Source: Zygnema circumcarinatum SAG 698-1b
Lineage: Eukaryota; Plantae; Zygnematophyceae
NCBI GenBank assembly: GCA_037447605.1
Contig: CM074810.1
Span: forward strand, 2,762,880-2,826,879
DNA: 64,000 bases
Direction of reading: 5' to 3'
In this document: piece after piece, positions 9,406-44,700 of the stretch
Layout of the letters: every line of letters begins with the position of its first letter
Position numbering within the stretch: position 1 is the stretch's first letter
Position numbers and translations under genes: made by a program
The notes under the pieces: generated by a model
What the model was told of the DNA's origin: nothing
Databases searched by the model: none
The model's input: only the letters and a program-made list of their open reading frames with translations

Positions 9406-12171
9406 TCAGAAACTAAACCTTCTCGTAGCCGGCTTCTTCTTTTTCTCATAGTCTTTAATCAACGCCAGAGTGGAGTCCGCATCCAAGTGTCCTTGATCCG
9501 CCGCCTTCTTCAGAGCAACTTGCGCCATTTCTATATCTTTCGTTACGCCCCGTCCGTTCAAATAGCACGCTCCCATGTTAAACTGAGCGTCCTTGAACCC
9601 CTGCTCCGCCGACCTCTTGAACAACTCGAAAGCCCTCTTCTCATCCTTAGGAACCCCTTGTCCACTGTAGTAACACATCCCCAACCTGTTTTCAGCCTTA
9701 GCATAGCCTTGCTCTGCCGCTTTCGTGAGCATTCTCACTGCCTGTGCCAAGTCCTTTGTAATGATTCCGTTACCATTCGCAAATATGACGCCCAACTGAT
9801 ACTGGGCTTCTGCATGTCCTTGATTTGCCGCTTTCTGTAGCAGCTCTACGGCGCGTTTCATATCCCTTGCTACACCACCTCCAATCATGTAAAGCAGCCC
9901 CAAATTGCATAAAGCACCTGCATGACCGACATCTGCCGCCTTCGTATACATGACAGAGGCTCGTTTCAAATCCCGGGAAATGCCGGTTCCATGTTGATAA
10001 CAGCATCCTAACTCGAAGAGGGCATCCACGTGTTCCTTGTCAGCTGCTTTCTTGTAGAGCTCCACCGCCCGTGGAATGTCTCGACGGACTCCCAAGCCCT
10101 GCATGTAACACGATGCCAACTCAACTTGAGCGTCTTCCAACCCTTGACCGGCTGCCCTCTCCAACAGTTCAACAGCCTTTTCTAGGTCTATTTGCACCCC
10201 ATTCCCGGTCTTGAAACACAACCCTAATTTGCACTGTGCCTTCAAAACACCCTTCTCTGCAGCACGTGTGTAAATCTGAACGGCCTGTTCCATGTCCATG
10301 GGGACTCCTCTGCCGTTCTCGTAGCACAGACCTAAACGGAAAAGTGCGCCCAAATGCCCCTGATTCGCCGCATTCCTGTAAAAAGTCACCGCCTGCTCGA
10401 AATCCGGCACTAACCCAGCTCTCCCCTCCTCACATTGCACCCCCAAGCGATAGGACGAATCCCCTTGATCTCCACTTTCCACTACCATAGAGTTTCCCTC
10501 ATCCCTACTTTCAATTCTCCCAGAATTTTGTTGATCCCCATTACCCATACTTGCGGAATTATCTGCAGGTGTGTTCAGTTCAATAGAGCTGATTCTCCTC
10601 AAATCACTAATTTCCTTCGAGGACCGTCTCGAGCTCTTCGCCCGTTCTACGAGGCTACGAACACAAAAATTGTCAACAAGACGAAGATCTCCAGTTCTGG
10701 GGTCAGTTTCAAGTATTTCATTTGTTAATGGGTCGGTTCGGTGCCCTCCTTGAAACCACTCTTGAATGCATTTTCTGTCATATGTATGCCCGGAATCCAA
10801 CATGACAGGATCCTCCATAATGTGGAAACATATGGGGCAGATGAGCTCAGGAGAAGCGTTATCAGGGTCTGCCTCGTCGACTACATTGCCTGCCACTTTG
10901 GAGGCAAGAAGTCCAATAATCGCTTGAATGTAGTGCTCCTCTTCTGATTGCTTGTCGGATACAGCGCGCTCCATATCCGCCTTCATCTCCTCCATGAACA
11001 TTCCGATCTACACAAGAACATGCCATGCATAATGGGTGAGTTGATAAGTGAGCGATACCTCGACATCATGCATGGCCATAGGCCAATTATGCGCACAAAC
11101 ATGACAAAAAAGCATGACTGCACGCAATGCATATGTAATGTCGATCACACTCGACTGCACGTGGAGTTCAAAACCAATTCTCACTAAACTAAGACAACCC
11201 AACTCAAAAAAAGTCCACCTCCTTGAGAAAGAGCGGGTCCCACCTCCTGCTGCGTGACCTCCCTCTCCTCCAGAAGGCGGCTCACAAGCGCGTCCACCGA
11301 CTCCGGCTTGTCCACCGCCGCCCCCCCCAACAGCGCCGCATTCTGCGCCCTCTCCTCCTCCCCCGCCCTCNNNNNNNNNNCCCGCAACTCTCGAGGAGTC
11401 CATGGATGTTCTGAATCTTGGGATCACCCGTGAGTAGCTGCAAAATGATGAGGCCGAGGGCGTACACGTCGGCAGTGGATGTGAGCATTCCCTTCCGTGC
11501 ATGCTCCGGCGCCATGTACCTGTGAGGAGGCAAGGAAAGGGAGACCTTGGAGAGATGAATAAATCCCATCCCCACAAAGAAGTAGAGGAGGGCGGGAAGG
11601 AGAACTGCTGAAGCGGCAAGAAAGCAGATTGGAATATGACGTACCCGGGAGTGCCTCGGAAATTGCGGGTTTTGACTGTTCCCTCAAACAACCTAGCGAG
11701 CCCCATGTCTGCCAGTTTGGAGGTGAGGTTCCCGCCCAATAGCACATTCTCCGGCTTCATATCGCAATGGAGGAGGTTCTTCTTATGCATGAACAGCAGA
11801 GCGGACGCCATCTCGTAGCATATTCGGATGCGGTCCGCCCAACCAAGGGGGGGATACTTGGCAGCAGGGCCTTTCAGGCGGTCCTGGAGGCTCCCTCCGC
11901 TCATCAGCTCACTCACAACGCAGCGCGCTTCGGGGCTCCATCCCATGAACTGCACAATGTGGGGATGGCGCAGCCGGCTTAAAGCCGCCACCTCCTCCTC
12001 GAACCCCTTCAAGGGGCCGCTCTCATGCAGCCTCTTCACCGCCACAGGGGTGCCGAACAGCAGTCCTCTGTAGACCGATCCAAAGGCTCCTTTTCCGAGC
12101 AGGTTTGTGTCGGAGAAGCTGTCGGTGATCTCCGCCATAAGGCTTTCCGGGAAGGTATCAGGCATTGCCAT
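9406..12171 (-). CDS. Paralogue 1: Ser/Thr kinase - [gap] - helical linker - U-box - short linker - 9 Sel1 repeats (exons 12171-11645, 11519-gap-11244, 11007-9406)
   Basis: Kinase motifs GKGAFG, VAVK, HCDMKPENVLL, LADMGLAR, GTPG|YMAPE; U-box [40 protein letters not shown]; nine ~36-aa Sel1 units (AxxxLGxxYxxGxGVxxDxxxAxxxyxxAA). GT-AG junctions are in phase. A 10-N gap at 11371-11380 hides the middle. Confidence 0.85.
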
Positions 12172-20060: not shown

Positions 20061-23000
20061 TCATGGCCAACTGAGCATTCTTCTTCCCGGCGTTCTTCGT
20101 ACCGCATAGTCTTTGATCAACGCCAAAGTGGACTCCGCATCCAAGTGTCCTTGATCCGCCGCATTCTCCAAAAGAACTTGCGCCATTTCCATGTCTTTCG
20201 TTACGCCTCGTCCGTTCAAATAGCACGCTCCCATGTTAAACTGAGCGTCCTTGAACCCCTGCTCCGCCGCCTTCTTGTACAATTCAACAGCCCTCTTCTC
20301 ATCCTTAGGAACCCCCTTTCCAGAGTAGTAACACATTCCCAACCTGTTTTCAGCCTTAGCATAGCCTTGCTCTGCCGCTTTTGTGAGCATTCTCACTGCC
20401 TGTGCTAAGTCCTTCTTAATGAAACCGTCACCGCTTGCAAATATCACGCCCAACTGATACTGGGCTTCTGCATGTCCTTGATTTGCCGCTTTCTGTAGCA
20501 GCTCTACGGCGCGTTTCATATCTCTTGCTACACCACACCCGATCATGTAAAGCAGCCCCAAATTCAAAAGAGCACCTGCATGCCCGAAATCTGCCGCCTT
20601 TTTATACATGAAATGGGCTCGTTTCATGTCGCGGTAGACGCCGGTTCCATGTTGATAGCAGCATCCTAACTCGAAGAGGGCATCCACGTGTTCCTTGTCA
20701 GCTGCTTTCTTGTACAGTTCCACCGCCCGTGAAATGTCTCGACGGACTCCCAAGCCCTGCATGTAACACGATGCCAACTCAGCTTGAGCGTCTTCCAAAC
20801 CTTGATCGGCTGCCCACGTCAGCAGCTCCACAGCCTTTTCTAGGTCTATTTGCACCCCATTCCCGGTCTTGAAACACAATCCTAATTTGCACTGTGCCTT
20901 CAAAAAACCCTTCTCTGCAGCACGTGTGTAAAGCTGAACGGCCTGTTCCATGTCCTTGGGAACTCCTCTTCCGTTCTCGTAGCACAGACCTAAACGGAAA
21001 AGTGCGCCCAAATGCCCCTGATCCGCCGCATTCCTGTAAAATATCACCGCCCCCTCTACATCCGGTCCTAACCCATGTATCCCCTCCTCACATTGTACCC
21101 CGGAGTGATAGGCAGAATTCCCCTGATCTCCACTTTCCACCACCATTGAATTCCACTGATCCCCACTTTCCACTACCATAGAATTCGCCTGATCCCAACT
21201 TTCCATTCTGCCAGAGTTCCGTTGATCCCCACGTTCCGTTCTTCCGGAAAACCCACTTTCCATTGTCCGTGAATTCCGTGGATTCCCATTTTCCACTCTC
21301 CCAGAATTCCGTTGACTCTCGTTTTCCATTCTTCGAGAATTCCGTTTCTCCCCACTTCATTCTCTCAGAATTTGCCTGATTCCCACTATCCATTCTCCCT
21401 GAAACCCGATGATCTCCAGTTTCCATTCTCCCAGATAGCCGTTGATCCCCATTTTCCAATCTCCCAGAATCCTTTGAAGATGTGTTTGGTTGAATGGAGC
21501 TGTTACTTGTCAGATAACTGATTTCCGTTGACCAGCTAGAGTTCCGTGCCCGTTCTCCAAGAGTACGGATAAAGATATTGTCACGAAGACGAATTTCTCC
21601 AGTTCTGGGGTCAGTTTCAAGAATTTGTTTGGTCAAGGGGTCTGTTCGGTGCCCTCTCCTAAACCAAACTTGAATGCATTTTCGGTCATACGTATGGCCA
21701 GAATCCAACATGACAGGGTTCTCCATAATGTGGCGGCATATGGGGCAGATGAGATCAGGAGACACGTCATCAGCGACTGCCACTTTGGATTCATTGTCTG
21801 CCATTTTGGAAGCAAGAAGTCCAATAATCGAATGAATGCAATGCTCCCCTTGTGATTGCTTGTCAGATACAGCGCCCTCCACTTCCGCCTTCAACTCCTC
21901 CAAAAAAATTTTGACCTGTGCGACGCCATGCATAAGGGATGAGTTCATATGTGTCGANNNNNNNNNNNNNNNNNNNNNNNNNNNNNNNNNNNNNNNNNNN
22001 NNNNNNNNNNNNNNNNNNNNNNNNNNNNNNNNNNNNNNNNNNNNNNNNNNNNNNNNNTCAAGACTCGGCGAGCCGCCCTGTCCCTCCACGCAGTGCAGCG
22101 CCACGTGGACAACTGCCTCTGTGTGGTCGCGCCCCCACGCCCCTCCCCGCGGGTCCAGCCTCGCCATGAAGACAGCTGTCGCCTTCTCCAACTCGCGCTT
22201 CGGCTGAGCTGGCCCGCAGCCCTCGAGGAGTCCATGGATTTTGTGGATCCTTGGTTCGCCCGTGAGTAGCTGCAATATGGTGAGGCCGAGGGCGTACACG
22301 TCGGCAGTGGATGTGACCAATCCCGTTCGTGCGTACTCCGGGGCCATGTACCTGTGAGGAACCAGCAAAAGGTGACCTTGGGAGATGAGTAGATCCGCCT
22401 TTTATAAAGTTGTGTACTCACTATCAAAGCTCACCTGAACATGAACAAACTCGCGGAGGATGGACGAGCGGGAGAAATTGTCAGCGGAGGATGGCGGGAA
22501 GGAGAACTGCTGAAATGGCAAGAAAGCAGATTGGAATATGACGTACCCGGGAGTGCCTCGGAAATTGCGGGTTTTGACTGTTCCCTCAAACAACCTAGCG
22601 AGCCCCATGTCTGCCAGTTTGGAGGTGAGGTTCCCGCCCAATAGCACATTCTCCGGCTTCATATCGCAATGGAGGAGGTTCTTCTTATGCATGAACAGCA
22701 GAGCGGACGCCATCTCGTAGCATATTCGGATGCGGTCCGCCCAACCAAGGGGGGGATACTTGGCAGCAGGGCCTTTCAGGCGGTCCTGGAGGCTCCCTCC
22801 GCTCATCAGCTCACTCACAACGCAGCGCGCTTCGGGGCTCCATCCCATGAACTGCACAATGTGGGGATGGCGCAGCCGGCTTAAAGCCGCCACCTCCTCC
22901 TCGAACCCCTTCAAGGGGCCGCTCTCATGCAGCCTCTTCACCGCCACAGGGGTGCCGAACAGCAGTCCTCTGTAGACCGATCCAAAGGCTCCTTTTCCGA

Positions 23001-23073
23001 GCAGGTTTGTGTCGGAGAAGCTGTCGGTGATCTCCGCCATAAGGCTTTCCGGGAAGGTATCAGGCATTCCCAT
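20061..23073 (-). pseudogene. Paralogue 2: kinase - [100-N gap] - U-box - long 33-bp minisatellite linker (frameshifted) - 9 Sel1 repeats
   Basis: Kinase exons 23073-22547 and 22350-gap; last exon from 21915 with U-box ICPICRHIMENPVMLDSGHTYDRKC. A 2-nt loss at ~21356 (ATG AA GT GGG where ATG GAA AGT GGG is expected) separates the U-box frame from the intact Sel1 ORF 21329-20061. It may be a functional gene with sequencing errors. Confidence 0.75.
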
Positions 23074-24859
23074 TGTTGTTGTTCGCGTGCCAGAGGAAGG
23101 CAACCCGCTATATCTCTAAACTCAGCACCTGCGCAACACACAATCAGAACACTTGAGTACGAATGCAATGCAGGCCCCGCAATGCACTCTGTTGGAACTT
23201 GAAAATAAGTCAGCTCTGTTATCGCTGTCTCACTTGTCAGTGTTCAATTGTTCAAATAAGTGTCACCTCATGCGCACTCTATCGGCTTGCTGTTATGATT
23301 CCTTTATGATGAGAAGTAGATGGAAGATGCTATGAAATAAAGAATGGTTGAAAAACGTTTGACGGCAATGTGCAGGGCAACTACACGCGCGCCAGAGGAA
23401 AATTTGCAGGTTAAATGTGAGGTTAATGCTTACTGAGGGCACTGCCTATAAACTCGAAACCCTCTCGGCAACTATTCACTTTAGAAAACAATAAGCAGAA
23501 CCCACACTCTCAGAGTGAATTGAAACCTAAACCTCGCTCCGAGGATACTGCCAAGCCCCTACCTGAAAGCCACAGGCCGATAAGCGCACCTCGACTCTAC
23601 ATTCGATCCGGACGTCAAAAGAAGAAAAGCCGACCCTCCATTGCCTATCTCTACCTTTCTCCTGTATAACGGCCTGCCTTTCCACATACTCGAAATCCTC
23701 AGCCCTAGACCCTAAACCATAAAGCTGAAGGGCTGAAACCCACTTCTCTCTCCCCCCCACATTTCCTCCCTCTCCCTCTGTTTGATCTCCCACTCCCTCG
23801 CCCTCTTCCTCTTCCTCTCCCTCTCCCGCTCCCTCTCCCCCTTCCTCCTCTCCACTCCTTGCTCGACCCATTCACGAATCCCCGGAGATTCCCAGATTCC
23901 GAAAAGACAGGGAGACAGGGCCAGTCGAAATTCATCCGATGCGATTTATCCACGTGGCGCGCCACCATTGGTCAATGTTTGGTATGACGTGGCCAATTGT
24001 GCCCACGTGTCCCTACAATTCGCATTTGGACGTTTGCGCAAATCACAGAGCTCGGTGTCGATCGCTCAAATTTCTGTTCGCAGGGTCCAATACCAATGGT
24101 TGAAAGCAATTCAACCATTGCAATCATTCAATCCTATGGTTAGCTGGGTCGCGAATTCAATGATTCGCGACTATTCCAATGGCGGTCCAACCAATGGTCC
24201 GACTTGTCAACGAGGAAGGATGTTCATTGAACTCACGATGCGTCCAATCGTTGCCGACCATTCGAAGGGGAGGGAAAATTTCATTGAACTCGCTATGGCG
24301 AGGCCATCAAATGTACATGGACAAAAGCAAAATGTGGAACCACGAAGGACTGGTCGCAAAGGACCGTTCAATTCATGCTACAGTCAGGGGCCCTCATATT
24401 TTCCACCCTGGTTTTGGCCAATATGAGGCGAAAATATTGATTTTGCATATATAAGGTTCGTGTTACCAATAGACGGGCGGTATTATGTTAGAGTTCATAT
24501 TGGGCCGTACGTATCGTACCGTATCGTACTGTATCGGCTACTACAACTCGTACGGCTAGTACGGATAGTACCGTATCGGGACGTTTCGTATCGTACCATA
24601 TCGTACCGTATCATATCGTATCGTATCGAAGCCAAAGAGAAGGGGAGAAGAGCGAGCGCCTCCTACGGCGGCTCGTCTGGGGAGATTAGGTGAGGTTTGC
24701 GTAAGCCCGTAACGGCTAGTACAGCTAGTACGGCTAGTACGGACAGTACGGACAGTACGGTAACACGAAGTTACCGTACAAAAAGGTGTTTCGGCAAAAT
24801 CGGGGCGAAATTCTTGGGGACGCACTCCTCAGGGCGGTAAATACGAGGGCCCCCGACTG

Positions 24860-26351: not shown

Positions 26352-28786
26352 TCACTGTCTCCAACTGAACATTTTTGACGGCGTTTTTTTTTTCGCGTAG
26401 TCTTTGATCAACGCCAGAGTGGACTCCGCATCCAAGTGTCCTTGATCCGCCGCCTTTTGCATATAAAATCTCGCCCTTTCCATGTCTTTCGTTACGCCTC
26501 GTCCGTTCAAATAGCACGCTCCCATGTTAAACTGAGCGTCCTTGAACCCCTGCTCCGCCGCCCTCTTGTACAGCTCAAAAGCCCTCTTCTCATCCTTAGG
26601 AACCCCCTTTCCAGAGTAGTAACACATTCCCAACCTGTTTTCAGCCTTAGCATAGCCTTGCTCTGCCGCTTTTGTGAGCATTTCCACTGCCTGTGCCAAG
26701 TCCTTTTTAATAATTCCGTTACCATTCGCAAATATCACGCCCAAATGAAACTGGGCGTCTGCATGTCCTTTATTTTCCGCTTTTTGAAGCAACTCTATGG
26801 CGCGTTTCATGTCTCTCGTCACACCACTTCCGCTCATGTAAAGCAGCCCCAAATTGCAACAAGCACCTGCATGCTCGAAGTCCGCCGCTTTTTTATACAT
26901 GACAAGGGCTTTTTTCATATCGCGGGAAATTCCGGTTCCATGCTGATAGCAGCATCCTAACTCGAAGAGGGCATCCACGTGTTCCTTGTCAGCTGCTTTC
27001 TTGTACAGTTCCACCGCCCGTGAAATGTCTCGACGGACTCCCAAGCCCTGCATGTAACACGATGCCAACTCAACTTGAGCGTCTGCCAAACCTTGACCGG
27101 CTGCCCTCTCCAACAGTTCCACAGCCTTTTCTAGGTCTATTTGCACCCCATTCCCGGTCTTGAAACACAATCCTAACTTGCATTGTGCCTTCAAAACGCC
27201 CTTCGCTGCAGCACGTGTGTAAAGCTGAACGGCCTGTTCCATGTCCTTGAGGACTCCTCTTCCGTTCTCGTAGCACAGACCTAAACGGAACTGAGCGCCC
27301 AAATGCCCCTGATCCGCCGCATTCCTGTAAAAGGTCACCGCCTGCACTACATCCGGCGCTAACCCATCTAACCCCTCCTCACATTGTACCCCCAAGTGGT
27401 AGTACGAAGTGCCCTGATCCCCACTTTCCATTTTCCCAGAATTCCGTTGATCCCCACTTTCACCAACCTTAGAATTCCCCTTATCCCCATCTTTCATACT
27501 CGCAGAAGTCCGTCGATCCCCACTGTCCATTCTCTCAGAACTCCGTGAGTCTCCGCTTTCCGCTACCTTTAAATTCCCCCAATCCCCAGTTTCCATCCTC
27601 CCAGAACTTCGTGGGTCTCCGCTTTCCGCTACCTTCAAATTTCCCTGATCCCCACTTTCCATCCTTCCAGAATTCCGCTGACTCCCACCTTCCTTCCCTA
27701 TTCCCCCTGAATTCCACAGATCCCAATTTCCCAAACTCTCAGAACTCCCTTTACTTGTGTTCAGTTCAAAGGAGTTTTGGGAAACGGAGCTCTCATTTGT
27801 CACGTCGCTAAAGAACCCGTCTTGGTCCCCTAACCGATCTATGAGACTACGTACACAGATATTGTCGACAAGACGAACATTCCCGGTCGTGGGGTCGGTT
27901 TCGAGAATTTCTTTGGTTATGGGGTCATTTCGATTACCTCTTTTCAGCCAAACTTGAATGCATTTTCTGTCATATGTACGGCCGGAATTCACCATGACAG
28001 GGTCCTTCATAGTGCGGCGACATATGGGGCAGATAAGCTCCTCGTCCACTTTTGTCTCTTTGGCAGCAAGAAGTTCAATAATCGTTTGAATGTAGTGCTC
28101 TTCTTGTCGACTTTTCTCGGATATAGCACGTGCCTTCTCCGCCTTCAACTCCTCCATGAACCTTTCGACCTACGCAAGGACAAGCCACGAATAAAAGATC
28201 AATTTATCCTGCTGCCAAGCAGTCATACGGAATTCAAGCCCCAAACGCTGAAAACCAAACCAAGTCAATCTCCTTGAGAAAGAGCGGGTCCCACCTCCTG
28301 CTGCGTGACCTCCCTCTCCTCCAGAAGGCGGCTCACAAGCGCGTCCACCGACTCCGGCTTGTCCACCGCCGCCCCCCCCAACAGCGCCGCATTCTGCGCC
28401 CTCTCCTCCTCCCCCGCCCTCAACACGCGTCCCATCTCCTCCCTACTTAGCTCCCGCGCCAGCAGGAAGTCCTGCTCGCAGTGCGAAATGCAGAAATTGA
28501 TGTCCTTTATGTCCTCAGAGATCTGCTCGTGAAAGAGCAGGCGGTAGAGCACGCTCCGCTTGCAGCGCGCGGCCAGTTCTGTGGCGGAGTGCACGTGCTG
28601 CAGCAGGTCCTGCAGGACCTTCTCTTCCGGTAGGCGGCCCCTCTCCGCCATGCGCCCCTCCAGGAGGGAGGAGAGCCGCTCCACGCGCCCGCAGAGGAGG
28701 GCGCCCATTTGCCCATGTGACGTCACGTTGTCCCACGCACGCCGCAGGGCTCCCACCGCCTGGAAAATTGTAATCGCCGTGTCCAT
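26352..28786 (-). CDS. Paralogue 3: N-terminal four-helix-bundle-like domain - U-box - minisatellite linker - 9 Sel1 repeats; no kinase (exons 28786-28295, 28169-26352; ~769 aa)
   Basis: ATG directly after ccacag; phase-0 intron GAG|gtggga...cgtag|GTC; U-box [40 protein letters not shown]; uninterrupted Sel1 array homologous to paralogues 1 and 2. Confidence 0.87.
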
Positions 28787-30299
28787 CTGTGGAAAGGGGG
28801 AGTGGTGTGGGGAAGGGAATGAGAGAGGGAGAAGGGGAGGGAGAGGGGAGGAGGGGGAGGGGAGGAGGGGGGAAGGACGGGGAGGGGGAGGGGGCGGGGG
28901 AGGAGGAGGGGCAGGGGGAGGGGGAGGGGGAGGGGGAGGGAGAGGGAGGGGAGGGGAGGGGGAGGGGAGGGGAGGGGAGGGGAGGGGAGGGGGAGGGGGA
29001 GGGGAGGGAGGGGAGGGGAGGGGAGGGGGAGGGGAGGGGAGGGGAGGGAGGGGAGGGGAGGGGGAGGGAGGGGAGGGAGGAGGGAGGGGAGGAGAGGGAG
29101 GGGAGGGGAGGAGAGGAGGGAGTGAGAAAGGGAGAAGAAGCGGTGAAGGGAGGATGGGACAGGGGAGAGAGGGATAGAGGGAGATAGGGAGAAGAAACAG
29201 GAATGGAAAGACGAGGAGAGCAGGGAAAGAAGGGGAAATAGAGGCAACACGCAAGAAAGGGGAATGAGAAAGAGAGAAATGTAATGGATAATGCGACAGG
29301 TTACCAGAGGGGGAGAGAGACTGTGAGAGAGGCGAGGCGAGACGAGGATAGGTCGATCGTCACAGTACGAGGGGGGGAGCTTCGTAGCGCACGCATCGCG
29401 TCACGTATCGTCAGGGTATGTTACGTGACGAGACGTGACACCTGCGAGAAGCGGACATTTGCCGTACAAATTTCTGCTAAACGACGGCAAGGCATCCTCC
29501 GTGGGGGTTCCATGGAGCCGTTGATCGTCGTGTTCGACGCTTTCATGACATATATCAGGGACCGTTGTCCGACGTGGCTGCCACGTGTGCATTGAAGGAG
29601 AGTTCCACAAAACGTGGAGACTTGAAACAGGATTTGGCCAATCGTGTGTCGCCACGTTTCCACAAATATCCACGTGGATGCCATGGTGGCTCGCTGCCAT
29701 CGACCCGCCGTGACTGTCGTTTGGTGTGGGAACTCCCAGGATATTGGAATGCCATGTGGCAATCTCTGATTGGCTGTTGGTCAATATACTTGATTAGTAC
29801 TTTGGATTGCACGTTAGTAACAAAGTGGCACGTTTCGGAGTACTGTTTTTGGTTACAAAAAGCCGGTTAAGGTTTCGTGGTCAGTAATTTTGTCTGACAT
29901 GCCTTGACTTACTCCCAGACAAAGGGGAGGTCCCGGACAACTACAAAAATAGCATATTCGATGCATATGCGGACAAGGGAATCAAAATCTCGGTAAAGGT
30001 CCTTCCGGTGAAGGTTTTTGTGGCGCAGATTTTTCCTGTCCCGGTTCCGTACCGTATTCGTTAAAAACCCAGTTTGCTGGGAAAAACCCAGACCGGCTCC
30101 ATGTCGCAGTACGGTAGTCATTTTCGCCGTTCCGTTTTGTAAATTGTAAATCAAACTAGCGTCGGGTTTTTTGTACCCGTTTTTTCGGAACTAGATTCTC
30201 TGGATACTCGTTCCTTGTGACGAGTGTATGGAATTTTCGCATTCCCGTTAAACAGTTTTCTATGCTTGACAACTCTTATTCAGGCAGAACTGGACCATT

Positions 30300-30505: not shown

Positions 30506-31244
30506 GAACCTTGCAACGTTAGGAGTCTCCATGCGAAAACGACGTTCTTGAGCCATTTTGTGCAACTACTGTACGGTAACGTTTCCATGTTCCTCATGCA
30601 ACTGGGTCTTTCCCGATCTATAAGGTTCAAGACCCGACCTCCGCGTGACAAGACAGGACTTCCACTCCCTTCAACTCGCAGTTCCAGTTACAATTTCAGT
30701 AACACCCCCAATTTTTTTCAATTTGTTGCCCCTTTTTTTCCAAAGTATTTTCTCCACTAGCACTCCTCCCCGTACGGCCATCCCATCCGCCGCGTCAGCA
30801 CGGGCCGACGATCGCACATGCGGCCACGTGTCGGCCGCCATCCCCAACAGTTGGTGGCGTGCTGACGTGGACTTTCTCCGCCAATCCGCGCACTGCGTGC
30901 CACTCGCGACCCGTCACAGTGCACCACGTGGCGCACTATCCACCCTCGCTGTCATTTCCACCCCTTGGGCCTCTGTGCAGCTCCCCTCGCCGCCTCCCTC
31001 CCTCTCCCTCTCCCTCCCTCTCCCACTCCCTCCCTCCCCCTCTCTCTCTCGCTCTCCCTCTCCCTCCCTTCGTTCTTCTTTCTCGCTCTCCCTCCCTCTC
31101 CCTCCTTTCCCGCCCCTCTCCCTCTCTCCCCTGCCTGCCCTTTCCCTGGAACCCAATTTTTTCCGTAAAGTTCCCTGCATTGTTCCATAATTCGCAACCA
31201 ATTCGCCCACACGAAGCCCCAGTTAGGGTTTCCTCCGCGCAGCC

Positions 31245-34200
31245 ATGGCGCTGCGCCTCCTCGTGGAGAGCCTCTTCCTCTCGTCCCTACGGCGGGCCCC
31301 ACCCTCCTCCCCGGTCGCCCTCGTGGCACGGGCCAGTGCGCTGGCGACAGCTGTCCCCGCGGAGCCGCCCAATGCGGGCAGGGGAGGGCTGTCGGCGGCG
31401 GCGGTGGCGGCTGAATCGACGGTAGAGAATGGGGCGCGCAATGACTGGACACGTGGCGAAATCCAGGCCGTCTACGACTCGCCGCTGATGGACCTGCTCT
31501 TCCATGGGGTATGGGAGGGAGGGAGGGAGGGAGGGAGGGAGGGAGGGAGGGAGGAGGCAGTGAGAGGGAGGGAGGGAGGGAGGAGGCAGTGGGAGGGGAG
31601 GGAGGGACAGGGAGGGAGGGAGGGAGTGAGAGAAGGTGGGAGAGGGTGTGGGGGAGGAGAGGATGAGGGAGAGAAAAATGTGAAGGGATGTAAAGAAATA
31701 AAGAAAGAAAGCAAAGGAGAAGGAGAAGGAGAATATCGAAAAGAAAGAAAAGAAAGGGAGGGAAGGAATTCGGAGGCAGCCAGTCAATTTTTTTTGAGAT
31801 GATTTTGAATTATAAAATTAGTTATTCTGATTTCTGTGTAAATAATGTGGCCTTTTGACTGAGCGGCTGTGTTACTGACATGGAACTGCCGCATTGCATA
31901 GTTAAACAGTAGCATAGAAACTGTCTGAATTATTGACAACTGGCAGACTCGATGCGCATAGGGACTAAAGCCAAATACATTTCTTTCTTTCTTTTTTTTC
32001 TTTAAAACATCTTTCCAGAATACGCGGCTTTGTTTTCTTTTCTTCGTAGGTGGTAAAGACAGTTTAATTTAAAGAAGTAGAAAGAAAACTGTCAGTCAGA
32101 AACATGCGACTCCAAAGGCCCTGACCCTTTTTTTGACAATTTTAATTTTGGAGTGCGCACGGGCAAAAACTGGACGCTTTACATGCTTCGAAACTTCTGA
32201 GATCTATCTTTATTTACTTGTAGACAAAATGCACGGCCTTTAGGCACTCGACCGATGGATAGAAAAAAGAAAACAATCCTGCACCATGACCCTGAACCTC
32301 ATCCCCTGAACGCTCAAACCCTAAAACCCTCGAACTCTAACTCCCAACCCCTGAACACTTCAATTCCCATCCCTACCCCCATTACCTCCTTACTCTCCTA
32401 TCCTACACCATACACCCCTGCACTCCTACATCGTACACCCTGAACCCTAAAGCTTAAACACTAAACCCTACACCCTACACCCTACACCCTAAACCCTAAC
32501 CCTACACCCTAACCCTAAACCCTACACCCTGCACTGTACACCGTTAACCCTAAATCTTAAACCCTAAATCCTACATCCCAAACTCTAACCCTAAACCCTA
32601 CACCCTGCTCTTTACACACTAATCCCTAATTCCCTAACCCTAACCCTAAACCTAAACCCTAACCCTAAACCCTAAACCCTACACCCTACACTCCAAACCT
32701 TAAAATCTAAACCCGAAAACCCGAAACCCGAAACCCGAAACCCGAAACCCGAAACCCGAAACCCGAAACCCTAAACCCTACACTCTACACCCTACACCCT
32801 CCACCCTAAACCCTACACCCTCCACCCTAAACCCTAACCCTCCACCCTAAACCCTAACCCTCCACCCTAAACCCTACACCCTCCACCCTCCACCCTAAAC
32901 CCTAACTCTGAACCCTAAACCCTAAACCCTAACCCTAACCCTAATTTCCGGGGGGGGGGGGGGCAGGCGCGGGTGCACCGCGCGAAGCATCGGTTCCGCG
33001 AGGTGCAGCGGTGCACGCTGCTGTCCGTGAAGACGGGCGGCTGTACGGAGGACTGCTCGTACTGCCCGCAGTCCTCCAAGTACGCCACGCCCGTCGCGGC
33101 CTCCAAGATGCTCGCGGACGACACCATTCTAGAGGCAGCGAAAAAGGTAATACACATATATATATTTTTTTTTTGGAAAATTTTGGTGGCTTGCGATTTG
33201 CTTTGCACGGATAAGGATGATGTCCGTCTCCTTCGTTTTTTTTTGGGGGGGGGGGTTCTGTTCAACAAAGTTGGGGTAAGGTTGTTGTGTGTGTAAGCTT
33301 TATTTATTTTTTTATTTATTTGTTTATGTGATGTTGAATGCAGGCGAAGGAGGCAGGAAGCACTCGTTTCTGTATGGGAGCCGCGTGGCGGGACACTTTG
33401 GGCCGCAAAACTCAATTTCAGCGAATCTTGAACAATGTGACTGCCATTCGGTGGGTACTTTCTTAACCGTTTTTTCAAAGAATTAATAAATATGACTCGA
33501 CATATTGGAAATTCATGAAGTGGGTTTTGTGAGAAATTCAGCAAGTCCTTTATCTCTTTTTCCGAGAATTGTATTGCAGATCAATGGGTAGTTAGCTCCA
33601 GCATAAAGTATCATCCTTACATTCAATATCTCTACAATTTCCCAATTCTGAAAAATGGGTTTTGCGAAGCTATTCCAAACACGCTTATCGATACCTTAAT
33701 CTCCTTTTTCGGGTTTTGCGTTTTGTGGAAAATTTGGCAAAAATATAGAGCTATGGGTATGGAGGTTTGCTGCACTCTGGGAATGCTGGAGGAGCAGCAG
33801 GCCAAGCAACTGAAAGCCGCAGGACTGACTGCATATAACCACAATTTGGACACTTCGCGCGAATTCTATCCTTCAATTATCACAACAAGGTCCTATGATG
33901 AAAGGCTCCAAACGCTCGAACATGTTCGGAATGCAGGTCTCTCCGTCTGCAGCGGTGAGTCGACCCCCCTTTACAGACACCTCATGCAATGTATACATCA
34001 TAGAATATCGTATATACTATGTAGAATACTATCTATGCATCATTTGCATTTGTATGCGATGGAATTTGTACATTGCATATGTCATCTATCACATGTCATA
34101 TACCGTACAATGAACAGACTGAATCTCTTCTTCAACAGATTGGATTATTTGCTGAAGATTGAGCTCTTCATCCTCAAAAACGCACAAAATGTAGCCTTTC

Positions 34201-34802
34201 ATGTAGCCTTAGCCTCTTTACAATGACCCATATCATGCAAGCTGCAGATACCTACAATGCATACATACATTCATGCATGCATTTATGTACTAATCCTCCA
34301 ACTACCCCCTTTCATGAAAACGACAGGTGGCATCATCGGATTGGGCGAAGCCGAGGAAGACCGAGTGGGCCTCCTCCACACTCTCTCCACTCTTCCGGAA
34401 CATCCGGAAAGTGTTCCCATCAACGCCCTACTGGCTGTGAAGGGAACTCCTCTTGAGAAACAGGAGCCTGTCAAGTGGTGGGAGATGGTACGGATGATTG
34501 GTACGGCCCGAATAGTGATGCCCGGAGCCATGGTACGACTCAGCGCGGGAAGGGTCCATCTCTCGCAGGCGGAGCAGGCTCTCTGCTTTATGGCGGGTGC
34601 GAATTCGATCTTTACAGGAGAGAAACTTCTGACTACGCCGAACAATGATGAAGATTCGGACACTGAGATGTTTGAGAGGCTAGGGTTGGTGGCGAAGCCG
34701 CCCTCGTTCGGGGCGGGAGGGAGTACGACGGAGGTGGGAGAGAGGGAGGAGTGGGTGGGAGAGGAGGAGAAGGGGGAGGAGGTGAAGATGGCGGCGCAGT
34801 GA
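31245..34802 (+). CDS. BIO2: Biotin synthase (radical SAM), mitochondrial-type; exons 31245-31508, 32967-33146, 33344-33450, 33749-33954, 34327-34802 (410 aa)
   Basis: [40 protein letters not shown] (CxxxCxxC), [66 protein letters not shown]. The N-terminus is Arg/Ser/Ala-rich like a presequence. All introns are GT-AG and in phase. Confidence 0.97.
32435..32945 (+). repeat. Degenerate telomere-like array (CCCTAAA/CCCTAA/CCCTACA/CCCGAAA/CCCTCCA) in BIO2 intron 1
   Basis: About 500 bp of heptamer/hexamer variants, including a run of about 8 AAACCCG units. Confidence 0.9.
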
Positions 34803-35518
34803 GAGGGAGAGGGAGGAGAAGGAGCAGGGTGAAGGAAAAGGAAGAGGAGAGATGGAGACGGGAGAGAAAGGAGAGAGGGAGAGAGGGGGATGGGGTGAAG
34901 AGACCAAGACGGAGTGTGGACGAGGGGAGGAAGGATGAACAGAGCAAGTAGATAAAGAGCGGAAGTGAGAGAGGCAGAGCGGGAGGGAGGGAGGTTGAGA
35001 GGTGGATAAGGGTATAAGATATGTGAGCAGCCGCTTCACTTGTTCAGTTGTAGGATTCTGATTTGGAGTTCCAGAACGAACTATTCTTCTATTCTTTTGT
35101 AGAATTAGAAATTTCTGAATGCGGTTCGCGACTGCCGGTGTCCTCTGTGTTGGCGATGTGGCGGGATGAGAAACTCACATGGACGATTTTTGAGAACTCA
35201 CTTCGATTGGTCCAAATTTTACATAGACCCCTTGAAAGAGTGAAGTCCCTACCTGAGCGCATTTATCGTTTTGATTGACTTAGTTAGTGAGAGTGCTAAA
35301 CTAGTGCTAATAGACAAGTAATATGGGCCACACAAATTGTTTGTCCAAACAAATGTACTTGGATATATTTTTTTGCAAAGATGTGTAAACTGAAAATTTT
35401 GAAAAGAAAATATATTCTCGCTTGCCTATACTTTTTGACGAAGTGAACGGTGTCAACGATTCTTGGGCCGGCACTCCATCGAGACTGACGGCATCGGAAC
35501 GTGGCATCGGAGCGTGCT

Positions 35519-35925
35519 ATGCCATGTCACGCCATGCCATGCCATGCCATGCCATGCCACGCCATGCCACGCCATGCCAGGCCACGCCATGCCATGCCAT
35601 GCCACGCCATGCCGTGCCATGCCATGCCACGCCACGCCATGCCATGCCATGCCATGCCATGCCACGCCATGCCGTGCCATGCCATGCCACGCCACGCCAT
35701 GCCATGCCATGCCACGCCATGCCATGCCATGCCACGCCATGCCATGCCATGCCACGCCATGCCATGCCATGCCATGCCATGCCATGCAACGCCATGCCGT
35801 GCCATGCCATGCCACGCCACGCCATGCCATGCCATGCCACGCCACGCCATGCCATGCCATGCCACGCCATGCCGTGCCATGCCATGCCACGCCATGCCGT
35901 GCCATGCCATGCCACGCCATGTCAC
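35519..35925 (+). repeat. (GCCAT/GCCAC)n pentanucleotide satellite, ~400 bp
   Basis: Continuous 5-bp periodicity with GCCAC and GCCGT variants. Confidence 0.95.
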
Positions 35926-35986
35926 CTCCCTCCCTCCGCCACACGGCCCGTCATCGACTTTTGAGGGCCGCTGCCGCGTCGCGGAG

Positions 35987-36052
35987 CGTGACGTGACGTG
36001 ACGTGACGTGACGTGACGTGACGTGACGTGACGTGACGTGACGTGACGTGAC
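35987..36052 (+). repeat. (GTGAC)n pentanucleotide, ~13 units
   Basis: Perfect cgtgacgtgac run. Confidence 0.95.
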
Positions 36053-36401
36053 CAGAACCAGAACCAGAAAGCGCGCATGCCGAGGGGGCGGGCCGCGGGA
36101 CCGTTCCATGTCCATGCGCTAGTTACAGTTTATCCGAAAATCAATATTTCACGCTGGAGGAAGCATGTGACGCGAGGGCACGGACCGTGCAAATATTTGG
36201 CCCGCGCAGGAGATTCCGCACGTGCCCCTCTCCGCTCCAAGAGCAGGCGAGCCGCGAGGCAGAGAGCGAGGGAGGGAGGGAAGGACGGAAGAGCGGTCCC
36301 GCACTGCTCAACAGGAGAGAGGAGAGGCGCGCCGCTGCGAGGAGGAGCAGGAGGGCAGCGCAGAGGCGGGGTGTCAGCGGTCGCAGGTGGACGCGGTCAT
36401 C

Positions 36402-36932: not shown

Positions 36933-37156
36933 GTTTGATTCTGCATGCTCTATCGGCTATTTTGCAGAGAAATTACAGTCCAAGAGTTTGAATTGGAGAG
37001 TGGAATTTGTTCTCTGGCGTAACTTTCCCACCTTCTAAGACTTGGACTGGTCAATCACTCGACCCAGCTAGCGGCTCTGCCTGCCCTCGAACAGAAGCAG
37101 TTGGAGGAGGTGGGGCTGTTTTGTGTGCAAATAAATAATTCACACCTTCTAAGGAG

Positions 37157-37245
37157 TTAGGGTTAGGGTTAGGGTTAGGGTTAGGGTTAGGGTTAGGGTT
37201 AGAGTTAGGGCTAGGGCTAGGGTTAGGATTAGGATTAGGGTTAGG
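37157..37245 (+). repeat. Interstitial telomeric repeat (TTAGGG)n, ~15 units (first 7 perfect)
   Basis: ttaggg x7, then ttagag/ctaggg/ttagga variants. Confidence 0.92.
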
Positions 37246-39534: not shown

Positions 39535-39937
39535 ATTCTTAAAGATGTATGTGTCAGCGCAGCAATTTTAGAGTCCCTTCTGAGGTGGTGAGATTCAGCA
39601 ATTAGTTGTGGGTCAGCATTTTTACAAGTCAGCATTTTTTAAGGCTTTATTTTCCCTTGTGCAAGCATTCAAGAACACTAAGGCAAAATGCATTGCAATG
39701 TCATTTACTGTTATATTAAAAATGTGCTTCAAGATAAGACACAATATAGCAATAAATGATATTACAATATTGATACATGCATTTTGCCTTGGTGTTCCTG
39801 AACGCTTGCACGAGGGAGGATAAAGCCTGAAGAATGCTGATTTGTAAATGCTGATTCGCAACTAGTTGTTGAATCTCATCGTCTCATAGGGGACTTTGAA
39901 ATTGTTGCGTTGACATTTCACATGCATCTTCAAGAAT
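39535..39937. mobile_element. Foldback/MITE-like element, ~400 bp, with ~170-bp imperfect terminal inverted arms
   Basis: The left arm attcttaaagatg...gagattcagcaattagttg...aaggcaaaatgcat pairs with the right arm atgcattttgcctt...caactagttgttgaatctc...catcttcaagaat. No TSD seen. Confidence 0.78.
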
Positions 39938-39950
39938 TGGTTCCTCACAG

Positions 39951-41762
39951 GTACATGGCCCCGGAGTACGCACGAACGGGATTGGTCACATCCAGTGCCG
40001 ACGTGTACGCCCTCGGCCTCACCATATTGCAGCTACTCACGGGCGAACCAAGGATCCACAAAATCCATGGACTCCTCGAGGGCTGCGGGCCAGCTCAGCC
40101 GAAGCGCGAGTTGGAGAAGGCGACAGCTGTCTTCATGGCGAGGCTGGACCCGCGGGGAGGGGCGTGGGGGCGCGACCACACAGAGGCAGTTGTCCACGTG
40201 GCACTGCACTGCGTGGAGGAGGACAGGGCGGCTCGCCCGAGTCTTGAAAACGATGTTGTGCCTCGCTTGCAGAGGGCAGCGGAGAATGCAAAGGAGGGGG
40301 AGCAACTAGATTCAGCAGTATCAGCACAAACGCCTGCACCCGAAAACGATGGAAAAAAAATGAATGAGAGCAGTCCCCTGGAGGAACTTGAGGATAAAGC
40401 TGAGGAATTAGGCCCTGCCACGGTTCTCACCCAAGGTGATTTGAATGAAGTCGGGTCTCTTGTGAAGGAAGTGATGGCTGTGTGGGAGAATGTGAAGTCA
40501 CATCGAAAGAAAGGCAAGGTGCTGAGCGAGACCGTGAATATCGTGTACGAAGCGATGAAGAGTAGAAGTTACCAAGGGAGTGACTTGGTAACTGAAAAAC
40601 TTGCAATACGCCAGTTTCAGTCTACCATGAAGAGGGCAATCGCTGTTGCAGAAAAATGCAATCAGAGCACTACGTACCGACTCCTGTTTTCTAACAACAT
40701 TTCAGCTGAACTTCTACAAATACAAACTGAGTTGAACACCTTCCAGCTTCCTTCCTTTCTTCTGGTGGTGAGAGAAGCGGGGAAAGGCGGTCAACCACCT
40801 TCTCCGAGTCAAAAAACCAATCTACTAGACACTCAATCCGATCCAATTGCTGAGGTGCGTTCCGGGTCGGGCTTGGAGAAGCGCTGTGATGGCATTCTGT
40901 TAGTTTCCGGGAGGGGTTTGGAAGTTTATGCATGTGCAGATTCACCTGTCGCTGTCTGTGATTGACGTGCCTGCCGGGATAAAGGCTGCTTCGTCAACAG
41001 ATTGAGGAGAGATTTGAACCGTCCCCCAGTTAGGAAATTGTCTTCGAATGTTGCAAAGTACATATCAGACCCTGAGTCCCTATAGCCTGAAGTTTGTGTG
41101 TATTTGCATTCCTTATGATATTCGACATGCTGACTTGTGATTCCCCTCCTTGCCTTGACCGTCAGGTCGAAACCCTTAAACAAGAGATCAAGGATAAGGC
41201 TGAGGCGCAGTTCCGTGTAGCTGTGCAATACGCTAACGGAAATGGAGTCCCCAAAGACATGGAACAGGCCGTTCAGTTTTATAGGCGCGCTGCAGAGAAT
41301 GGCCATCGTGATGCCCAGTACTATTTAGGTTGGTGCTACGCGAATGGAGAAGGAGTCCCCAAAGACATGGAACAGGCCGTTCAGTTTTATAGGCGCGCTG
41401 CAGAGAATGGCCATCCTGAGGCCCAGTACAATTTAGGTTGGTGCTACGCGAATGGAGAAGGAGTCCCCAAAGACATGGAACAGGCCGTTCAGTTTTATAG
41501 GCGCGCTGCAGAGAATGGCCATCCTGAGGCCCAGTACAATTTAGGTTGGTGCTACGCGAATGGAGAAGGAGTCCCCAAAGACATGGAACAGGCCGTTCAG
41601 TTTTATAGGCGCGCTGTAGAGAATGGCAGTTATCACGCGCATGACAAGTTAGGTGACTGCTACAGGAAAGGAGAAGGAGTCCCCAAAGACATAGAAAAGG
41701 CCGTTCAGTTGTATAGGATGCAGGAATTTGCATGGTGCAGCGGCCAACCAATCCCGTGCTGA
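39951..41762 (+). pseudogene. Paralogue 4: kinase C-lobe only - four-helix-bundle-like domain - near-identical Sel1 repeats; no U-box (exons 39951-40767, 41166-41762; decayed last repeat to ~41950)
   Basis: The exon starts cag|G TAC ATG (phase 2) and is nearly identical to paralogue 2 kinase exon 2; no N-lobe exon was found upstream. The phase-0 intron lies in an equivalent position to that in the other paralogues. An out-of-frame remnant KDAQFNVGVCFL...GHLKAEST follows the stop. Confidence 0.75.
41247..41720 (+). repeat. 108-bp near-perfect coding tandem repeat (Sel1 unit), ~4.4 copies
   Basis: GTCCCCAAAGACATGGAACAGGCCGTTCAGTTTTATAGGCGCGCTGCAGAGAATGGCCAT... recurs every 108 nt. Confidence 0.95.
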
Positions 41763-44700
41763 GGCTGCAAATATGTTTCGGAGACTAACAGTGGTGACAG
41801 GGGATCAAGGACGCTCAGTTTAACGTGGGAGTGTGCTTTTTGGACGAACGAGGCATGACGAAAAACGTGGAAAGAGTGAGAGAGTATATGCAGAGGGCGG
41901 CGGGTCAAGGCCACTTGAAGGCGGAGTCCACTCCGGCGTTGATCGATAAGCCCTTTTGGAGGTGGTGTATTCAGATTGTGTTTTAGGGCAGGCTTGAAGA
42001 AAGAGTGAGGGTTTTTATCGTCGCTGAATGTGAAGTCCCTGTAGGGGCATACCTTGATAAAGTCACAAGGAATTTTACCATTATTTATTTATAATATAAC
42101 TGAATGTTGGGCTTTGCCCGCTAGCCAGGCTAAGACTTAGACGTAGTGGGAGGAGGTGAGGTAAGGTCAGAGCTTCGAGGCTCGTGACTTTATCAAGGTT
42201 GTCGAGCGTGGTGTTTACTTTACAAAGTGACCCTACCAAATGGTCGACTGCTCTGGAAAAATATATAAAAAAATGTGGGTAATTGCATTCGCTTTCCATC
42301 ACTTTCCGTCCACGCTCAAAATTGTCAGTCAGATTCAGTTCCACTTCCAGTCCTGATTCAGTTCAGTTTCACTTCCTCTTGCACTTTCAATGAAACATTC
42401 AATTTATTTCATGAGTGTTGTCTGAGTCCCTTTCCCGTTTCTGAGAAGCCNNNNNNNNNNNNNNNNNNNNNNNNNNNNNNNNNNNNNNNNNNNNNNNNNN
42501 NNNNNNNNNNNNNNNNNNNNNNNNNNNNNNNNNNNNNNNNNNNNNNNNNNTCGCACGCGCGCGGCCTGCTTCAGACCTCGCTGATCGCCGCCGCGACTTC
42601 TCCAAACGCCGCTCGCGAACTGCCGCTGGGCCCTCGTGACTAAATGGGCCAAGCCGCCAAGGCGCTGGAGTCCGCTTGTCGTTGTGTCGGTTGCTGTCAC
42701 GGGCGGAAGTGGGCGCCAAGGAAGTCTGAAATAACCATGGCGACGCCACGTTGACGCGATTTCCGGCCAAGATTTTCTTCGCGACGCCCATTTCTTTTGC
42801 GCAACAAAATCGCATGGGTTAGGCGTTCTTTTAGTAAACCCCACGGTCAATCTTCGCAACGTTGACCCGTTGACTTAGCACAGTTGACTTCCGTTCGGTT
42901 CGGCTTCTAGGTTCGGGGCACGAAGGATTTTAGTACTTAGTAACCTCGATTCTCGTAAAACTAAAAACTCGATATTCGTAACATTTTGTTAAGTCTGACA
43001 CGCCCTAGTGACACAAATACGTTGGGATCGATATGGTCACTACAACGCGAGTACACTGTAGACTGTACGGACAACAAAAGTCTGACACTTGCTCGCTAAT
43101 TCACAAAGTTCGGACGCACTATGAACTTCCGTAATTGGCATCGTTTCGCTAACCGCCATTCGCGACGGTATCAAAATTTTCTTAGACCGCCGCATCATGC
43201 TGACCTGGATTAGAATGAGGAGATAATGGGGAGCGGGTATCAATCTTCACGAATATGCGGTCAAAGTCAGCACGGGAAACCACGGGAGTTGGCTATCGCT
43301 ATCAATCACTAGTCAATCAATCTATCAATCCATCAAAAGTCTCCATCAATTTTCTTGTCGCTATTCGCTAATCGTGATGACTAGAATACGCAGACCTCAC
43401 CTTTCCGTGTTGACCAACCGAACTGTACCGCCACACGGTACGGAGCGGGCTCCGGCGCGGTACAGTAGTGGCCCCCTCTCTCTCTCTCTCTCACTCTTGC
43501 TCCTATTGGTGCCGTACATTTAGTTACACGAGCTCCTTGTTGTTCCTCACATATACCGTACGATTTTGAAATTGGAAAATTGTGTTCTCACACCTTTTTT
43601 GTCTACACACAGACCTTTTTTCACCGGGCAGGTTCTATTTAAAAAAAAAAGGATTAAAAACGAAAATGATTTTTTTACACCTTTTTTGTCTATACACACT
43701 CCATTTTCCGTCGGGCAGATTTGATTTTAGAACCAAAAGGTTTTTAAACCCTAAAAACGCATTATAATTCCACAAGCATTGCCAGACACATCCGGACAAT
43801 CATCAGACATTGCGGCATTGAGGGATGTTTAACTTTGCGACCTCTTTGAGCCTCTTCGTCTCTTTGACCCAATACGAGAAGTGTTTGCTGGCCTGTAACG
43901 TTTACTTGCCATTCAAACAATGAAAAAATGCTAAAATTTGTGCTTTCTCCCTTTTTTTTTCACCGAAAATCGATGACCGAGNNNNNNNNNNCCAAGTAAT
44001 GAGGAGTCAGATCCTACGGTGGAGGACGCGGATGGAGATAAGGCTAAGGCGGATCTGACGGCAATGATGTGTTGGATCCGTGCAAGCCTACGAGGATCCG
44101 ACGGCGCGAGATTAGGATTGGGATAAGGGTCTTGCAAGGCGTTGCATGTGCGGCTGTGACGTGACAATGTCACTAATGGCGCCATATTGTATTTAAGGCT
44201 TAGATTGTTTGGTAGAATTAACCTTCTCGTGACTCACAGTGGGGTGAGGCTATCTTGCTTAGGGCCTAGGAGATAGAGGGAAGAGTTCAGCTTGTAGTGG
44301 GTGGTTTATTCACGTAGCTTGAGAGGAGGTGCTTGAAGCTTGGCGTTAGTGTTGTCAAGTTGTATTCCAACTTTATCTTAAGGAGTTTTAGGCTGGTGGC
44401 TTTCTCCTTACATTTTCATATTTCCGCTGAGTTGTTCTCTTGCATTTAGTGTGCTTTGTGTGATTGAGCAATTCATTGAAGATGTCGAGTTCTACCCAGG
44501 GTAGAGGAGAAGTGGCAGCTGTTGGTGCAGTGACTCCTCCATTGCTGCCGGCTTCTCCACTCGCATCACCTTCCATCGGAGTTCGCGTTCCAATCGATGA
44601 TGACATTTCCCAAACTCTCACTTGCACTCATAGCCCATTTTACTCACAGAGTGAACCTCACAGAATATGCACAGCGGAATAACAGAGAGAAAAGGATAGG

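Follow-up and report, generated by a model that had tools for sequence, protein, structure and literature searches.

Introduction

The helical bundle of the MLKL/HeLo/RPW8 type is an executioner module shared by animal necroptosis, fungal incompatibility and plant helper-NLR immunity (NLR, a receptor with nucleotide-binding and leucine-rich repeat domains), and plant U-box ligases carry a relative of this bundle, the poorly understood U-box N-terminal domain (UND). Modules of this kind are known from other proteins as cell-death executioners or as docking parts of ligases. Here we describe a 64,000-nucleotide stretch of the Zygnema circumcarinatum SAG 698-1b genome (contig CM074810.1, positions 2,762,880 to 2,826,879 of the forward strand; hereafter the window), in which tblastn located four paralogues, P1 to P4, of one modular family. 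Our main subject is the first exon of P3, which probably encodes a highly divergent bundle of this group, placed in front of the U-box of a predicted ubiquitin ligase.

The UND of PUB ligases is the closest working analogue of the P3 bundle, because of its position before the U-box, the matches of P3 to PUB12, PUB13 and PUB14 models, and the repeat domain after the U-box. In these three Arabidopsis PUB-ARM ligases, as in P3, a helical bundle and two further helices precede the U-box and a repeat domain follows it; they differ from the array in the window, where some paralogues have a kinase fused upstream. The N-terminal executioner domain of MLKL (PF22215; human 2MSV, 6ZVO and 6UX8; mouse 4BTF; Arabidopsis MLKL2/3 6LBA and 6KA4) shares its fold with the predicted P3 bundle, down to the short helix that separates helices 3 and 4 and the brace-like continuation, but identity is about 13-18% and the basic lipid-binding cluster of MLKL is not conserved. 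The domain order differs as well: MLKL runs from bundle to brace to a C-terminal pseudokinase, whereas in P1 and P4 a kinase precedes the bundle, and P3 has no kinase and passes from bundle to U-box. The published definition of plant MLKLs puts the bundle (MCAfunc / Cbl-N superfamily / DUF1221) at the N-terminus and the kinase after it (bioRxiv 10.64898/2026.08.07.743466), the reverse of the order in P1 and P4.

RPW8 or CC-R (PF05659; NRG1.1 CC-R 7L7V/7L7W), MCAfunc (PF19584) and DUF7792 (PF25055) lie in the same structural neighborhood as the P3 bundle, but the proteins that carry them have an NB-ARC, PLAC8 or ARM partner, none of which occurs in this array, and the Pfam scores fell below the curated thresholds. 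MCAfunc is found in MCA1/2, CNR13 and plant MLKLs, and DUF7792 at the N-terminus of plant ARM-repeat proteins. Finally, short U-box and Sel1 proteins of protists and giant viruses have the same U-box-then-Sel1 core, in about 260-300 residues that include neither an N-terminal bundle nor a kinase; clusters of such proteins were nearest to the full-length homologue described below by language-model features (score 0.81, a lead only).

Results

P3 is a predicted U-box ligase with a helical bundle as its first exon

P3 is probably a U-box E3 ubiquitin ligase of about 769 residues, with the divergent helical bundle as its first exon. Its parts are as follows:

28786-28295, minus strand: exon 1, with the ATG at 28786 and 164 codons (read from the sequence)
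28457..28786, minus strand: four-helix-bundle core, residues 1-110 (AlphaFold predicted local distance difference test, pLDDT, about 80-93)
28298..28444, minus strand: two linker ("brace"-like) helices, residues 115-163 (AlphaFold, low confidence, pLDDT 45-62)
28170..28294, minus strand: intron 1, 125 nt, GT...AG, phase 0 (sequence reading and homologue colinearity)
26352..28169, minus strand: exon 2, through the stop codon (Pfam)
about 28050-28169, minus strand: pre-U-box helix, in exon 2
about 27867-28043, minus strand: U-box (Pfam U-box E 1.3e-12)

The original prediction, made from the letters of the DNA, had set an N-terminal four-helix bundle at 28295-28786, and these coordinates proved exact at both the start codon and the donor that follows 28295. 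The donor GT occupies 28294-28293, the last letter of the acceptor AG is 28170, exon 2 begins at 28169, and both junctions are in phase 0. The splice is supported because the junction, VTQQE/VERFMEEL, is colinear with an uninterrupted VTAQDVAQYRADLEAL in the intron-free protein sequence of both Klebsormidium-type homologues, with whose start Met that of P3 also aligns. Exon 2 opens with the pre-U-box helix and continues through the U-box and a linker of acidic Ser/Gly-rich repeats to nine Sel1 repeats (Pfam Sel1 E 1.8e-90, nine stretches), giving a spliced product of 769 residues. The phase-0 splice puts the bundle exon directly N-terminal to the U-box in the same predicted polypeptide, and the Klebsormidium-type proteins have the same order. 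One helix had been misassigned: FMEEMKA...EEHYIQAIIGLL, quoted for P3, belongs to P1 (exon 11001-9406), and the P3 version reads FMEELKAE....

The acidic Ser/Gly-rich linker between U-box and Sel1 (27430-27830, minus strand, P3 exon 2) is a tandem peptide repeat, with similar repeats in P1 and P2 and a copy number that varies by paralogue. Purine-rich (GGA/GAG-type) low-complexity tracts recur at many places in the window (among them 28790-29250, 3150-3550, 18800-19210, 31000-31700 and 39250-39380), one of them directly upstream of the P3 start codon; such tracts yield long spurious Pro- or Gly/Glu-rich open reading frames (ORFs). A resemblance to the CC-NLR MADA motif, noted by eye at the N-terminus of P3, was dropped; the Klebsormidium-type sequences do not conserve it.

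The bundle is conserved between P3, P4 and Klebsormidium-type proteins

The alignment of the P3 and P4 bundles, first made by eye, is real. BLASTP joined the two at 42 bits, with 30% identity over 91 residues and a pairwise E of 2e-10, and their Smith-Waterman score of 98 compares with 25.4 +/- 4.5 for shuffled sequences (z 16.3). Over the three comparisons P3-P4, P3-Klebsormidium-type and P4-Klebsormidium-type, z ranged from 12 to 21, and the observed score was reached by 0 of 2000 shuffles. The invariant columns of the family alignment are W18, N20, V21, S23, H24, E55, K56, C75, S78, Y81-R-L-L-F85, I89 and S90, and the motifs picked out beforehand from P3 and P4 (WxNVxSH, EK, YRLLF, IS and others) fall on them.

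When 1.84 billion representative proteins were searched exhaustively with HMMER, a P3 and P4 profile gave a single match at E <= 0.001, a 686-residue transcriptome protein (P0001; E 2.3e-7, residues 10-114). The Klebsormidium nitens protein KFL_007190040 (P0002) is 78% identical to it, and both have the layout of P3, with an N-terminal bundle, a coiled coil, a U-box and Sel1 repeats. Judged by sequence, Klebsormidium-type proteins of the same layout are the only detectable relatives of the P3/P4 bundle among the 1.84 billion proteins; the window's own proteins were absent from the protein databases searched. Word-indexed protein searches with the 164-residue domain alone, or with the 4-sequence alignment at E <= 10, gave no match, their length window and 5-mer seeding being unsuited to a divergent domain. 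In the precomputed Pfam annotation of the public K. nitens protein, which lists U-box, Sel1 and TPR_27 only, the bundle is unannotated. The bundle is conserved as protein and is a real domain.

Because the layout of P3 is common to the Klebsormidium-type proteins, we infer that the kinase-less layout is the older one and that the kinase fusion is particular to the array of this genome. The K. nitens orthologue (DF237668.1, 14558-20322) has a separate protein-kinase gene as its immediate neighbor on the opposite strand, which could be chance or a hint of a kinase association before the fusion.

Sequence and structure point to the MLKL_N/RPW8/UND group

In Pfam, P3 matched DUF7792 (E 0.0035, 17.9 bits), P4 matched MLKL_N (E 0.026, 14.5 bits) and DUF7792 (E 0.033, 14.8 bits), P0001 matched MLKL_N (E 2.1e-4, 21.3 bits) and RPW8 (E 0.1), and P0002 matched MLKL_N (E 8e-6). 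MLKL_N was thus hit by three of the four members (best E 8e-6), DUF7792 by two (best 0.0035) and RPW8 by two (best 0.014), the RPW8 matches (E 0.014-0.1) coming from the Klebsormidium-type homologues only. All of these matches are in one register, with about residues 10-110 of the domain against about positions 2-103 of the profile.

A profile of the four family sequences, compared with 177,635 distinct PDB sequences, gave eight matches at E <= 10, six of them MLKL; the top five were the human MLKL executioner domain (E 0.008-0.01), with profile positions 9-115 aligned to MLKL 8-118. Four sequences were needed for this, as a 2-sequence profile gave a chance match only. In the profile alignment the NVKSH-basic segment of the family stands opposite EMKYCKKQCRR of MLKL, and CxxSxxYRLLF, the motif of the short helix that separates helices 3 and 4, stands opposite SNRSNICRFLT. 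The basic cluster of MLKL helix 1-2 (KYCKKQCRR) is not conserved: it has a counterpart in P4 (HRKKGK) but not in P3 (HGQMGA), and the net charge of the domain runs from -1 to +4 across the four sequences. By language-model features the P3 domain was nearest to MCAfunc, MLKL_N, DUF7792, RPW8 and PUB10_N clusters, all from Streptophyta (0.93, 194 of 256 features shared), with PUB10_N a neighbor at 0.85.

AlphaFold modeled P3 exon 1 with a mean pLDDT of 73.7, and of about 85 over residues 1-110. The predicted helices span residues 2-19, 25-47, 55-75, 79-84 (a short helix bearing the YRLLF motif) and 86-109, followed by 115-138 and 144-163; in the model they form the MLKL-type fold, an up-down four-helix bundle in which helices 3 and 4 are separated by a short helix and which is continued by brace helices. 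For the N-terminal module of the homologue (residues 1-310) the model was poor overall (pLDDT 60, predicted template modeling score 0.33), with a confident U-box, the same helix order and a long helix before the U-box at low confidence.

In the PDB, Foldseek matched the P3 model best to 6zvo_A, the executioner domain of human MLKL (E 0.2, probability 0.97, template modeling [TM] scores 0.53/0.59), and many other MLKL entries, the NRG1.1 CC-R and Rx CC domains were also matched. A search of 48,161 chains independent of Foldseek ranked the human MLKL N-terminal domain first (Z 12.9, 133 residues aligned, root-mean-square deviation 3.5), with mouse MLKL in second place (Z 12.5) and AtMLKL3 in fourth, and gave 11.2 for the best unrelated chain, a designed cage; as unrelated helical proteins often give helical models a Z of about 13, evidence from the fold is supportive but not decisive by itself. 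Among Swiss-Prot models the top match was PUB12 residues 8-159 (E 0.017, TM 0.63, 21% identity, probability 1.00), with PUB13 (TM 0.65, probability 1.00) and PUB14 (probability 0.99) alongside; over P3 residues 2-152 the TM scores by query for these three N-termini were 0.57-0.65. Other high matches there were the RPW8-type NLR At5g66910, mouse MLKL, RPW8/HR proteins and CNR13. The structural alignments to MLKL and PUB12/13 extend through P3 residues 145-152. In the AFDB clusters, matches at E 4e-4 to 1e-2 were named MLKL-domain, DUF7792, MCAfunc, RING-type E3 and fungal N-terminal domain, and the top row in the ESM Atlas was a plant cluster of kinase plus MCAfunc.

Five largely separate lines, none decisive alone, place the bundle in this group: Pfam, the family profile against the PDB, language-model features, the AlphaFold model with its PDB matches, and the Swiss-Prot matches to PUB12/13/14. 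Together with the agreement of the three structure searches, they uphold the original prediction of a four-helix bundle of the MLKL_N, UND, RPW8 and MCAfunc kind. Although highly divergent, P3 exon 1 probably belongs to the helical bundles of the MLKL_N / RPW8 / MCAfunc / DUF7792 / UND group, a strength that we attach to the explanation of P3 as a whole.

The other paralogues combine the bundle with a kinase

The window is eukaryotic and plant-like, with spliced genes, Ty1/copia elements, an RLK/Pelle-type (receptor-like kinase) kinase and assembly gaps. Besides P3, it holds the following parts of the family:

11381..12171, minus strand: P1 kinase, IRAK/Pelle (RLK)-type, upstream of the bundle (tblastn)
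11371-11380: P1 assembly gap of 10 N, which adjoins the bundle-exon tail and hides the rest of the exon
11244..11369, minus strand: P1 bundle-exon tail, 126 nt (tblastn, 100% amino acid identity to P3 residues 123-164)
9406..11001, minus strand: P1 pre-U-box helix, U-box and Sel1 repeats (ORF and tblastn)
20061..23103, minus strand: P2, whole (tblastn and gap list)
23103-22060, minus strand: P2 kinase
21958-22057: P2 assembly gap of 100 N, at the expected site of the bundle exon
21909-21367, minus strand: P2 U-box
21218-20067, minus strand: P2 Sel1 repeats
39910-40965, plus strand: P4 ORF, continuous, with kinase C-lobe and bundle
39937..40245, plus strand: P4 kinase C-lobe (tblastn, 93% identity to the P2 C-lobe)
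40405..40809, plus strand: P4 internal bundle copy, in the same ORF as the kinase C-lobe (BLASTP to P3, 42 bits; Pfam)
41166..41944, plus strand: P4 downstream exon or exons with Sel1 repeats (sequence reading, tblastn, Pfam Sel1 E 6e-62)

The kinase-then-bundle order that had been noted in P4 is confirmed by its single continuous ORF. Since P1 also has a bundle-exon tail after its kinase, P1 carries the bundle exon behind the kinase, and this order is a family trait, not an oddity of P4. Upstream of P3 there is no kinase. P1 11205-11370 and P3 28256-28421 are 97.6% identical in DNA over 166 nt (blastn), in a tract that ends at the P1 gap and covers the 3' end of the bundle exon and 39 nt of intron, whereas elsewhere the two genes are 74-89% identical; this pattern suggests gene conversion or, alternatively, an assembly join at the 10-N gap.

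In P4 a likely donor, GAG/GTGCGT, follows 40854 (sequence reading), and the first residues of the downstream exon, VETLKQEIK, are homologous to those of P3 exon 2 (VERFMEELK). Relaxed tblastn found no kinase N-lobe or U-box in 35000-43000. Because both are absent and the downstream exon runs from VETLKQEIK straight into the Sel1 repeats, P4 is, as read from its sequence, a truncated derivative.

The kinase ORFs show the motifs GKGAFGS, VAVK, HCD..N, DMG and APE. In P2 (22405-23103, minus strand) and P1 (11584-12171, minus strand), HCD replaces HRD, making the kinase non-RD, and DMG replaces DFG, with the other catalytic motifs intact. The best PDB sequence relatives of the P2 kinase, which is near-identical to that of P1, are IRAK1, a lectin RLK, BRI1, Pto and IRAK4. 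From its motifs, the fused kinase looks catalytically competent and non-RD; in keeping its catalytic motifs it differs from the MLKL pseudokinase. Kinases of the non-RD class are frequently associated with innate immunity.

A biotin synthase-like gene of several exons, with a radical-SAM motif (31245-34802, plus strand) lies between P3 and P4, so that the paralogue array is interrupted by a housekeeping gene. Between this gene and P4, a long microsatellite-like tandem repeat (35420-36080) encodes (H)AMPC/RHAMP units in several frames. From 45400 to 62000 there are several nested Ty1/copia-type retrotransposon fragments (gag-integrase-reverse transcriptase ORFs), broken by small assembly gaps.

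Discussion

Overall, the best explanation of P3 is in our judgement a bundle-bearing U-box ligase in which the bundle plays a UND-like role, and we hold it to be probably correct. Several observations weigh against it. The window's sequences stay below the curated Pfam cut-off of 27 bits that applies to both MLKL_N (PF22215; 14.5 bits for P4, no match for P3) and DUF7792 (PF25055; 17.9 for P3 and 14.8 for P4), and none of the four members gave an hmmscan match to PUB10_N (PF25368) or MCAfunc at E <= 10. In the structure searches the Foldseek E-values against the PDB were 0.2-1 and designed helical repeats reached Z 11-12.4, and the AlphaFold model itself was built on a 4-row alignment. The splice and gene model of P3 are predicted from genomic sequence and homology, and the PUB-ARM ligases have ARM repeats where P3 has nine Sel1 repeats. 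As the window's sequences lie below the curated cut-offs, their formal family membership rests on transitive and structural evidence.

Under the UND-like explanation, the bundle would be a docking or auto-regulatory module of the ligase, possibly membrane-associating or oligomerizing, and the counterpart of the UND. The Sel1 repeats would bind substrate or ligand, and in the kinase-bearing paralogues (P1 and probably P2) the kinase fused in cis may control the bundle/U-box unit by phosphorylation. Land plants have receptor-kinase-to-PUB relations such as SRK-ARC1 and BAK1-PUB12/13, and the kinase-bundle-U-box arrangement would be a fused version of this relation.

The main alternative, which we regard as unlikely, is that the bundle is an MLKL/RPW8-type executioner that is released on activation, oligomerizes and permeabilizes membranes, the array then being an NB-ARC-free cell-death receptor family. 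Activation could run from a ligand at the Sel1 repeats through kinase autophosphorylation to oligomerization by way of the brace and coiled-coil helices. The best matches among solved proteins, in sequence and in structure, are indeed the MLKL executioner domain, with the NRG1 CC-R also matched; the tandem array has a shuffled domain content, with and without kinase and with and without U-box, and its kinase is non-RD (HCD), all of which would fit such a family. However, the position directly before the U-box is the arrangement of UNDs, which are not known as killers, and the kinase lies upstream instead of downstream and looks catalytically competent, unlike the MLKL pseudokinase. The basic cluster opposite KYCKKQCRR, present in P4 and missing from P3, together with a net charge near neutral, likewise argues against membrane killing. 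It is more economical to read the bundle as a UND-like module for docking or regulation on an E3 ligase.

A fuller version of the killing scenario, which we consider less probable still, is that the array is a set of NB-ARC-free death switches in a streptophyte-like lineage, in which an MLKL-like bundle that forms pores, fused to a U-box ligase, is gated by a Sel1 sensor together with a non-RD kinase of IRAK type. If true, this would unite necroptosis-like execution and ubiquitin signaling in one polypeptide, and plant MLKLs and the UND-PUB ligases of land plants would have diverged from the ancestral state that it represents.

It seems quite improbable that the likeness is convergent, with the exon a generic helical spacer or coiled coil that packs as a bundle in the model and has no common ancestry with MLKL_N or the UND. 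This idea draws on the marginal value of every single statistic that links the window's own sequences to known families, on the Z of about 13 that helical models commonly reach against unrelated helical proteins, and on the exhaustive HMMER search, in which no annotated family was connected with this one at E <= 0.001. Against it, independent methods agree on one family group and one register, a Klebsormidium homologue reaches E 8e-6 to MLKL_N, six of eight PDB profile matches are MLKL, and the NICRFL segment of MLKL is aligned with the short helix that carries the motif and separates helices 3 and 4. Decay, in which a kinase would have been lost from P3, and a kinase N-lobe and a U-box from P4, leaving bundles with no present function in both, would fit the missing parts of P4 and the presence of only a purine-rich low-complexity tract upstream of P3, but we give it very little credence, given that the P3 ORFs are intact with canonical splice sites, that its kinase-less layout and start codon match those of the Klebsormidium-type proteins, and that exon 1 has a word share of 0.86-0.96 in several small (35-43 Mb) contig sets, of unstated kind, that a search for RNA runs listed for the same organism.

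The fold superfamily and the logic of a UND before a U-box are known; this architecture and its lineage are undescribed. In the library searched, no paper connected U-box, Sel1 and Klebsormidium, and none connected MLKL and the U-box N-terminal domain. In this family the predicted bundle stands before a U-box with Sel1 instead of ARM repeats, sometimes after an apparently active non-RD IRAK/Pelle kinase, and relatives were detected only in Klebsormidium-type algae. Such a family offers a testable entry point to when the bundle-U-box module arose, and to whether its original role was killing or docking.

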